A stretch of DNA of 64,000 bases, taken from NCBI GenBank assembly GCA_963924565.1, contig OZ004609.1:34720001-34784000 (forward strand), given 5' to 3'. The notes beneath the pieces are model-generated. The model made no database searches. It was not told the DNA's origin and worked only from the letters and a program-made list of their open reading frames with translations. Numbering within the stretch: the first letter of the stretch is position 1; every line of letters begins with the position of its first letter. Source of the DNA: Ascidiella aspersa (lineage: Eukaryota). A program made the translations under genes and the position numbers. Positions 22,301 to 25,300 of the stretch are shown piece by piece.

Positions 22301-25300
22301 TATCAATTTAAGAAGCCTTAAAAATTCAACGCTATAGTACGTCTTTAAAAATCGGATAAAATTAATATCGTAGGATATCGGTATCGGAATAAAATGTCAA
22401 ACATCGGACATCCCTATACTGGTCCACCACGAAAACATATTGCAGTAACCGCCTAATGTATTATCTATACTCCGAAACAATCAAGCGAACCTGCTTGTCC
22501 TTATCGAGCCTGTTGATGTTGCTCTGCGCCTCCTCGATATCGTGCGAGAGATCGGACACTTGGCGGTCGAGCTTGTTCTTGGCAGAAGAAAGCTGAGCAT
22601 TGTTGGCCTCGTCTTCTTCAAGACGCTCAGACATGTCAGCCACCTTTACGAGAAGATTAGTTAATTTATAAGGCGCAGAAAAGCAGCTTCATGAGGGCTG
22701 GTCACAGTTGTTAAAAACGCACGGTATGTGTGTGTGAGGCGCAGAAAAGCAGCTTTAGGTCACAGTTATTGAACACATATGTGTAGGTATCTTTCCTTGA
22801 ATGATCTGCGATCATTTTTGGTGTACTATGATACGTAAGCGGTTATCGTTGGTCAAAAAGGAGCTTCAGACGGTCACAGTTGTAGATCACAGTTGTTAAA
22901 CACATATGGATGTGTGTATCCTTATTTTATCGATAAAACGGGGAGTTTTATTTTCTGGATGGTATATTGACAAATTTGGCGAGTGTGCGTAGAGCTCTGA
23001 AATGTTTAAAGCAATTTTTTTGTTAAAGTCGTCTGTTACTAGACCTACCATGCCTTCAGGTTAAAACAAACAGGCTTACTTCATTTTTTTAAATTAAAAA
23101 GATATGGTTTACGGAGAAATAGAGAAAGAATAACATTGTTTTTTTTCTTATTTTTAATTTCCTTATTAATTAAAATTATTATAAAAATTGTAAATAACAC
23201 AAAATAAATACACTGACGATAAACATTCCATCACAAAGATTCTAGTGTAGATTTTGAATGTCCTGTAACAATTTAGCGTCCTTACTGTGAAAAATGTTAT
23301 TACAATGCTACAGATTGCTTTACCTCGTTTTCCAAGTCCTGCTTGTTCTTGACAAGTTGCTCATTGCGTTCCTCTGCATCAGCCAAGTTGTCTTGTTCCT
23401 GGAGACACAAAATTTGTCGTTATTTTGCCATTGTTTATCAAATAAATTCGCCATATTATTGACTCATTTTCATCCCAGAAGCCTTACAAGGGGTGGTACA
23501 ACTTATTGCGACAATGTGTCACGGTTAACATTTAAAAAATAACGCGGGAGTTTTGATATTTTAAGAAGTTTAAGAAATTGAAAGGAATACCATGGTAGAA
23601 TGGTATTCTGGTTTTAAATTCCAAATTTCCATTTGATAATATAGACTCAAACTCTGTAGAATTTTTAACCCAAAAATTTAGTGAAAGTTTGGATCTTTAA
23701 CTAATAAACATTCGGGTCAAATAGTGACTTTTCTTACTCCATTTTCTGTGCTAAAACGCCGACGTTTGTAAACAAAAACTAACGTGTCTCATGTACCTCG
23801 AAGCACAAGCGATATTGTGCCATTGGTGGCACCCTAGTGTTAACCGCTTCGTCCACAAAACGCGCTTTAACTTGTTTCTCGTCCGAAAACTCTCCGGCGA
23901 TCTCAACTTCCGCATTTGCAGCGACATGAAGATTTTCAACCGAATTCGACGGGCTTAGAGAGGGCGATTTCCCGCCGATTCTCGAAGATGCGCCAGAGGT
24001 CGAAGAAGGAGCGACGTCGCAGTCGTTAAGCAACCAGTTGGCGACCGCTTCCGCCTTGCTCGCATCCACCTCTTCAACCTCTTCTTCTACTTCTTGGCTT
24101 ATTTTTTCCTCCTGCGCTTCCGGCAGATCATCGTCGAAGGTCAAACTTTCGACCTCGTCACTCGCGTACAGATTGCGCAATTCCTTGAGCTTGGATCCAC
24201 GCTGGCTCGTCATCAGCGAGCACCTTCGAGCGTCCTTTATGACGTCACCGCTCCCATTGTCTTCTTCTCGACTATTCACAGTAACCTCTTCTGCAAAACT
24301 GTGGCTCAATTTTTGCTTTCGAGTTACCACCTCATCATTAACGATGACGTGTTGGATATTGACGTCACTGCTTTTAATGTCGTCATAGTTTGTTTCGTCA
24401 CCATTTTCGGCGACATCGAGCCGAGCGGCCTCCCATCGCTCTACGTCATAGCTGTGATGCAAGCCGCTGCTGTTTTCGCGCGATGACGTCGAAGCGGTGA
24501 CGTCAGAGACACGCTTGAGTTCGCGCGAGCTGCGACTTCGAGTGCGAGTGCGCATGCGCACAACGGTGACCTCCTGAAGGTCAACAGAGTTGATTTCTTG
24601 TTGTTGTTGTTCATGTTGTTGAATTGCTAGTTTACCTTCAGCTGCTTGTTGAGGACATATGAGGCTCCTGTTTCTTGTGCGACGACGCGTCAGCACCCTG
24701 TTGGGGTTTGTGTCACCCATTTGGTTGTTTTGGCGACCCAGCTTTGCTCAAAACTTCACTACGTAAAATCTACTGTGGCCTTATATAATTTTGATGTAAG
24801 ATTAGTAGTGCTGTGCGTACAGTTTGTTTTGTATCGATTGGTAATACTTTAGTTCCTAGATCTCACTTTAGAAATGTGTAAGGTACGCGATTTAGGGTTT
24901 TGTTTGTTTCACAACCGTTCATGTCGGTTGCGGTGTTCATAACCTGCCTTAAACTGCTAAAACTGGGTTTATTCACCCTAAACCGCCACTTATGTTGCGT
25001 TGCGTAGAGCACCGACCACCTACAGGAGCATGTTTTTTTATCTTATATAAACAGAATAATACAGTCAGACAAAAAGCGCACATATATTGCCTATAAAACA
25101 TATCTAGTTATAAATTGTATAAAACCAAAGACGTTAAGAAGCCATTAGACGAAATACGTTTTTACTAGAATGCGTTAATGTGGTGAATCTAACGCACGAC
25201 TCGTTCTTGAGAACATAGTACTGTCTGAATCATAGTTGTAGTTGAAAGATTTATGTACAGCAGGCTATTCAAAATTATGTACAGCAGACTATTCAAGATT

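Follow-up and report, generated by a model that had tools for sequence, protein, structure and literature searches.

Motor-less rod proteins made from a myosin gene are known in Drosophila (Mrp) and in molluscs (catchin/myorod), where they are found in thick filaments and have been linked to special mechanical states. Drosophila Mrp comes from the muscle Mhc gene through an alternative start at the head/rod junction, and it has a unique N terminus and nearly the whole rod with no motor or light-chain sites, according to the account of Standiford et al. 1997 given in PMC3912159. The unique domain of the molluscan catchin/myorod proteins shows conservation across related species and is targeted by a kinase (Yamada et al. 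2000; PMC4410989; PMC3912159). A chordate myosin gene with a motor-less isoform from an internal start has also been described, the vertebrate, brain-specific headless myosin X (Hdl-Myo10) (PMC6345916). Here, we analyzed a 64,000-nucleotide stretch of DNA, called the window below (Ascidiella aspersa assembly GCA_963924565.1, contig OZ004609.1, positions 34,720,001 to 34,784,000 of the forward strand). The minus strand encodes a myosin heavy chain of the sarcomeric type, and the intron at the head/rod junction of its gene contains a long open reading frame (ORF). We believe that this ORF is probably the coding part of an alternative first exon that is spliced to the rod exons and encodes a headless rod protein, built like Mrp and catchin but with an unrelated N terminus.

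The host gene was identified with Pfam, in which single exons matched Myosin_head (E values of 1e-27 to 7e-29) and further exons matched Myosin_tail_1 in collinear order. We modeled the exon chain with our own dynamic-programming script, which combines codon log-odds with splice matrices trained on the gene itself, and obtained about 41 credible coding exons running from ~46.3 kb to ~7.9 kb. In this model, the intron at the head/rod junction is 6,612 nucleotides (nt) long, compared to 260 to 1,264 nt for the other ~40 introns. An initial annotation, made from the letters of this DNA, had put the other coding introns at ~0.3 to 1.3 kb, a range that the exon-chain model returns. It had also stated that the longest ORF of the window sits on the gene's own strand in the 6.6-kb intron following the residues LTLQLQA, which is what we found (Table 1). 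This intron interrupts the rod after about 50 residues, and the 308 codons fall between positions 51 and 52 of the tail profile. Downstream, single rod exons are collinear with Myosin_tail_1 at profile positions 78 to 124, 595 to 662, and 953 to 1010. The rod part, for which ~1,064 amino acids had been estimated, is in agreement with the 1,034 that we count before the tailpiece exon.

Two features of this arrangement are those of headless rod isoforms. The ORF lies inside a class-II muscle myosin heavy chain gene, on the gene's own strand, at or after the head/rod junction. It also supplies a unique 5′ coding sequence with its own ATG. Because an in-frame TGA lies just upstream of this ATG, a simple in-frame cassette exon is excluded, as the initial annotation had argued.

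Table 1. Features of the myosin locus discussed in the text (positions are those of the window)
Feature	Position	Strand	Remarks
ORF, 313 aa	23779..24720	minus	Longest in the window; the next two are 185 and 161 aa
Coding part of the proposed alternative first exon	23797..24720	minus	308 codons, 924 nt; from the ATG at 24720 to the donor
In-frame TGA	24748..24750	minus	Just upstream of the ATG; the stop-free run begins at 24747
TATATAA box, candidate core promoter	24781..24787	minus	61 to 67 nt upstream of the ATG, read from the sequence
Three perfect CRE palindromes, TGACGTCA; candidate muscle cis-regulatory cluster	24240, 24360, 24498 (24240..24505)		Inside the exon
Proposed donor, GTACAT after GAG	23791..23796	minus	Phase 0; last exon base 23797
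TAG stop	23779..23781	minus	Five codons past the donor; reached only if the exon is unspliced (313-aa product)
Intron of the proposed isoform	23399..23796	minus	398 nt; no AATAAA or ATTAAA
Canonical upstream exon	30011..30184	minus	Ends ...LTLQLQA; donor GCG/GTGAGT, last base 30011; Myosin_tail_1 profile positions 2 to 51 of 1081
Shared rod exon, 25 aa	23324..23398	minus	Phase-0 acceptor; Myosin_tail_1 profile positions ~52 to 77, between those of the flanking exons
22 shared rod exons	7926..23398	minus	3,102 nt, 1,034 aa before the tailpiece exon (exon-chain model)

Comparison with the described proteins places the predicted product closest in layout to Drosophila Mrp. In both, the start is at the head/rod junction of a muscle Mhc gene and a unique N terminus is followed by nearly the whole rod, here as predicted from the sequence. 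In Mrp, the unique part extends the first rod exon at its 5′ end, whereas the tunicate one is a separate exon 398 nt upstream that would be joined by splicing. The two N-terminal sequences are unrelated, and while the N termini of Mrp are not conserved even among close relatives, blocks of the tunicate exon are conserved in a second organism. One system belongs to arthropods and the other to a chordate. Like catchin/myorod, the tunicate product would have a unique domain that is conserved, here with a candidate kinase site (RRCS). The molluscan proteins belong to a muscle without striations, and ascidian body-wall muscle likewise lacks them. However, catchin starts ~260 residues further into the rod, and its unique domain (~156 aa) is shorter than the 308 aa found here. 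No sequence similarity between the two was detected. Indeed, searches of protein sets of 5.8 and 1.84 billion sequences, Pfam, and a structure atlas gave no detectable similarity of the ORF domain to the unique domains of catchin/myorod or Mrp, although isoforms grouped with full-length myosins may have been hidden from them; this makes it by sequence an analogue and not a homologue of these. Hdl-Myo10 is more distant, being an unconventional, membrane-binding class-X myosin that has neither the filament-forming class-II tail nor a long unique N-terminal domain.

The chordate side of this comparison draws on the genome itself, which is tunicate-like in that contig C5 carries a Glyco_hydro_6 exon (a genome search score of 28.1 bits, rising to 33.8 bits with E 4e-8 once the exon was translated). 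To our knowledge, the GH6 domain is found among animals only in tunicate cellulose synthase. The suggestion of a probable chordate, specifically tunicate, host in the initial annotation was therefore sound.

The ORF is a genuine single-copy coding sequence under purifying selection on the myosin strand. Its stop-free run of 322 codons would be expected ~9e-4 times per window at the ORF's own G+C content of 51%, and ~1e-6 times at the 38% of the window; the G+C fraction is ~0.50 to 0.52 over the ORF and ~0.30 to 0.40 in the intron. Four sequencing runs (X1 to X4) were aligned to the window. X1 and X2 are DNA runs of flat depth, with X2 coming from a second individual. None of the four single-base differences listed between X2 and the ORF (23815, 23941, 23962, and 24001) alters the protein, and all affect third codon positions; with synonymous changes making up 22% of those possible in the ORF, this has P = 0.0024. 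A three-base change at 24650 to 24652 leaves one codon silent and replaces another. The adjoining 398-nt intron has eight single-base differences and two indels in X2, about five times the density of the ORF, and the first difference past the donor (23792, T to A) would turn His into Leu if the frame were read on. The ORF occurs once in the 308-Mb genome in both a DNA search and a protein search, and Pfam has no family for it. These results dispose of a transposon- or virus-derived ORF; a transposon match was among the outcomes that the initial annotation had named as refuting its reading.

We found one relative of the ORF. A HMMER search of 1.84 billion representative proteins returned a single match (E 5e-4), the 288-aa protein P0001, which comes from another organism, is encoded on a 1,475-nt ENA contig, and forms a one-member cluster. 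Pairwise BLASTP between the two gave an E value of 3e-15. The blocks that they have in common are RRCSLM..SKLxELRNxY, VxNWLL, and FVxExxNxRVPPxxYxxCFE. The last of these is also the best, and it stops exactly at CFE/V (with the slash representing the splice point), which is the predicted donor; nothing aligns beyond it. In both proteins, the residue after CFE is V, i.e., a GTN codon containing the donor dinucleotide. P0001 continues for 26 residues past CFE, and in this tail the share of D+E falls from 17% to 4% while that of residues with AT-rich codons rises from 23% to 38%. This composition is intron-like, as expected of a frame that continues into an intron. A word-indexed search of 5.8 billion proteins with the ORF and with an ORF-P0001 profile gave no further relatives, in a set where clusters of full-length myosins may hide isoforms. 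The same profile found no relatives in a scan of JGI metagenomes, and the ESM Atlas held no usable match for the ORF. Two matches to the pattern RVPP..Y..CFE/GT were set aside as chance hits in G+C-rich, bacterial-type contigs. Across these collections, the exon is lineage-restricted.

Splicing of this exon to the rod was predicted from a phase-0 donor, GAG/GTACAT, ending the exon at 23797 and fitting the phase-0 acceptor at 23398. Both signals can be read in the sequence, the acceptor as ...tctccag/GAACAAGAC, with 23398 as the first exon base. The donor is weaker than the initial annotation implied. It scores 5.4 bits, which is the 7.5th percentile of this gene's donors (leave-one-out). Among the 406 GTs of the intron, it ranks in the top 5%. 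The same annotation saw no minus-strand AATAAA between donor and acceptor, and we likewise found neither AATAAA nor ATTAAA from 23300 to 23800, where there are weak variants only.

We then turned to the two remaining runs. X4 is the single run recorded as RNA; in the ~6% of it that was read, depth was zero on the ORF and on the myosin exons alike, so this run is uninformative. X3 must be RNA-derived, because it contains a spliced myosin joint, 22641 to 23322, at a depth of 1,055 while introns have a depth of 5 to 9. This joint (CT..AC, cut +2; partner 22643) confirms the 3′ end of the shared exon that begins at 23398. A 1,256-nt contig of X3, with a depth of 5.5, is placed on 25021..23792 and then ends in 24 letters that match nothing nearby. 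A joint of the form GAG/GAACAAGA... would place five letters in the intron (GAACA compared to GTACA, one mismatch), with the alignment ending at 23792 and 24 letters left over. Logan contigs are built with k=31. The 5 + 24 = 29 exon letters are the number predicted at this k before the contig joins the canonical path, which is abundant, since only the final G of GAG is shared with the GCG at the end of the canonical exon. A fixed T to C change in X3 at 23375 cuts the exact match of the 24 overhang letters to 17, which would explain why these letters were reported as a loose end and not as a joint. Depth in X3 over 23400 to 23790 is 0 to 2.5, compared to 5.5 on the ORF, which could reflect splicing or a divergent heterozygous stretch. 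With these three numbers in agreement, we infer the splice from 23797 to 23398 from the geometry of this contig. Of the proposed RNA check on this junction, X3 thus returned the expected geometry and X4 no information.

The headless rod protein of the initial annotation is partly supported, by a coding and selected ORF, a relative whose similarity ends at the proposed donor, matching phases, and an X3 contig whose match to the genome breaks off there. In X3, however, the ORF contig reaches ~0.5% of the depth of the myosin exons, a level that does not exceed the intron background. This is one of several points that weigh against a first exon spliced to the rod. The contig also runs past the TATA box to 25021 with no sign of a transcript start there, and its end at 23792, where X2 has T to A, may instead reflect a divergent haplotype or an indel. 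The donor is weak, and a stronger GT is found 13 nt downstream, out of frame. On the variation side, the list of X2 differences leaves out 5 of the 24 on the X2 contig concerned, so the synonymous count may be incomplete. P0001 is a lone relative and is known from its 1,475-nt contig only. Finally, the 1 kb upstream of the exon shows no excess of E-boxes or MEF2 sites; a single E-box and one loose MEF2-like match are present there, and CArG boxes are absent.

Some of these points would be explained by the main rival, a nested and independent single-exon gene. Such a gene would have its own promoter, would be read through to the TAG at 23779, and would produce a free, disordered 313-aa protein unrelated to the myosin tail. 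The ORF is complete in itself (ATG, TATA box, and a stop five codons past the GT), and the gene call for P0001 is likewise a 288-aa ORF standing by itself, with 26 unrelated residues at its end. The weak donor and an abundance in X3 no greater than that of introns fit as well. However, a transcript ending in the intron would find no AATAAA or ATTAAA before the acceptor, and the genome match of the X3 contig breaks off at the donor when it should run into the intron. Conservation stops at CFE/V, beyond which the tails of the two proteins differ both in length (5 compared to 26 aa) and in composition. The four X2 differences before the donor are silent, and the first one past it changes an amino acid. 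The phase match with 23398 would in addition be a one-in-three coincidence. Taken together, we consider an independent nested gene unlikely, and we retain an exon spliced to the rod as the better account. Near its donor, the GT at 23783 (CAC/GTTAGT, 8.6 bits) would, if joined to 23398, shift the frame and lead to a stop within a few codons; this is a possible non-productive alternative.

How such a transcript would start is a separate matter. The initial annotation reported a TATA box ~60 nt upstream of the ATG, and the TATATAA that we read there agrees with this. With the three CRE palindromes inside the exon, it makes an internal promoter a candidate. The 64-kb window contains 22 copies of the palindrome TGACGTCA, where 0.63 would be expected; their flanks are unique, and they group at a few places within and near the myosin gene. 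The muscle-gene promoters of Ciona show an enrichment of CRE sites, on which reporter expression depends, and such sites are present where regular E-boxes are absent (review, PMC6589888). From their distribution here, the CRE clusters may mark the muscle cis-regulatory modules of the myosin gene, and a muscle-active regulatory element at the exon is plausible. The CREs do not locate the transcript start. Outside the exon, the palindrome is found at 941 to 961, 5016, 6102 to 6462, 35642 to 35932, 38426 to 38453, 47316 to 49999, 55325, and 61381, and the cluster at ~47.3 to 50 kb adjoins the likely 5′ end of the myosin gene. The second-longest ORF of the window (6107 to 6664, minus strand, 185 aa, Ser/Thr/Pro-rich) lies downstream of the last myosin exons and holds five CRE palindromes, like the 313-aa ORF in this respect. 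This second ORF has no Pfam match.

The CRE sites allow a further explanation, in which this G+C- and CRE-rich block acts as an enhancer of the myosin gene from within the intron and the ORF is a by-product or a cryptic exon. Low-level spliced RNA would then arise from cryptic initiation or splicing, with no consequential protein. Three perfect CREs in the block, together with like clusters elsewhere in the locus that include one in the second orphan ORF at 6107 to 6664, are in line with an enhancer. The same holds for RNA at the depth of the intron background that continues upstream of the TATA box, and for the failure to find a protein family, fold, or atlas neighbor for the ORF. An enhancer nevertheless leaves unexplained a 308-codon open frame of similar length in a second organism with a protein-level E value of 3e-15, and it does not account for differences restricted to synonymous third positions. 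The conserved peptide blocks also differ from the CRE sites. We regard an enhancer with an incidental ORF as quite unlikely.

Tunicates trans-splice many mRNAs, and the process resolves internal cistrons. The exon could be real and spliced to the rod, as we favor, and have no promoter of its own, its 5′ end being made by spliced-leader trans-splicing of the myosin pre-mRNA or belonging to an RNA with a far-upstream start. The genome is tunicate-like, and candidate AG dinucleotides occur just upstream of the ATG (e.g., ...ttttacgtag/TG near 24762). X3 covers the region upstream of the TATA box without a break and as deeply as the ORF, and a muscle E-box/MEF2 signature is missing upstream. On the other hand, no spliced-leader sequence or junction was seen, in an analysis that made no search aimed at one. 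Continuous upstream coverage is equally explained by pre-mRNA, and the well-placed TATA box and the CRE cluster favor a conventional start. This origin of the 5′ end appears very unlikely to us.

In the model that we favor, transcripts starting inside the intron would skip the whole motor and light-chain-binding region. The start would most likely be at the TATA box ~65 nt upstream of the ATG, near the CRE cluster, and the donor GAG/GTACAT at 23797 would be joined to 23398, the acceptor in normal use. This gives a predicted product of ~1,370 aa, with an acidic, largely disordered N terminus of 308 aa and ~95% of the coiled-coil tail (Myosin_tail_1 from position ~52 of 1081). We expect that it would dimerize and co-assemble with full-length myosin into thick filaments. 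Both the dimerization and the place in the thick filament are inferred from what is established for Drosophila Mrp, molluscan catchin/myorod, and the assembly-competent light meromyosin region. Its presence there would dilute the heads, and its N-terminal extension would have a regulatory role.

The unique 308-aa domain has a predicted mass of 34.4 kDa and a pI of 4.9. Its first 80 residues are basic and rich in Arg, Ser, and Thr, and its middle is acidic. AlphaFold2, run with the two-sequence alignment, gave a mean pLDDT of 44.6 and only short helices (residues 23 to 45, 174 to 186, 201 to 214, and 220 to 232), which models the domain as largely disordered. RRCS is the single R-R-x-S site conserved in both the ORF and P0001, and its sequence fits a target of basophilic kinases.

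More tentatively, headless muscle-myosin rod proteins may have originated independently a third time at this locus, which would make it the first chordate case. It would combine a lineage-restricted, disordered exon bearing a conserved RRCS site with a CRE-rich internal start and would serve thick-filament tuning, possibly in unstriated body-wall muscle, in convergence with catchin/myorod and Mrp. The initial annotation knew of no described deuterostome example. Our literature search, with most subscription journals outside its reach, likewise found no chordate class-II headless or rod-only myosin, returning engineered constructs and the class-X Myo10 only. Mrp and catchin/myorod are not reported in chordates by PMC3912159, and a tunicate muscle review mentions no headless rod isoform. 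If the proposal is true, a chordate case with an unrelated N-terminal domain would show that this design has originated repeatedly. It would also add a new thick-filament component to ascidian muscle biology, especially for the unstriated, troponin-regulated body-wall muscle, and would make the large introns at the head/rod junction of MYH genes in other deuterostomes worth searching for similar hidden first exons.

The remaining observations concern the large intron and its surroundings. High-copy repeats are found in or beside it in five short stretches (22800 to 22999, 25400 to 25799, 26200 to 26399, 27000 to 27199, and 27800 to 28199), and they account for part of its length. All runs show k-mer depths from thousands to tens of thousands over these stretches, where many RNA reads continue into other sequence. 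A repeat search of the large intron showed no structure around the ORF, and an Rfam scan of the window returned nothing, hence no intronic myomiR-like RNA. Two products of the exon-chain modeling were discarded. In the first run, part of the ORF was used as an internal exon through a shifted canonical donor, an artifact of the coding score. Micro-exons at 28382 to 28357 and 25224 to 25194 were also artifacts, since the tail profile has no room for additional residues between positions 51 and 78.

Intron polymorphism is high, at ~2.5% of positions, and X2 carries insertions of 21 nt (22734) and 17 nt (23607) in the introns on either side of exon 23324 to 23398. Inside a short tandem duplication at 25254 to 25321, 66 nt are skipped by X1 and X2 alike, even though one of these DNA runs agrees with the assembly elsewhere; either the copy number differs or the assembly has slipped. 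A forkhead-domain gene lies upstream of the myosin gene on the same strand (58292 to 59954, minus strand); Pfam Forkhead matched 59763 to 59954 with an E value of 2e-17, and the gene has a second exon.

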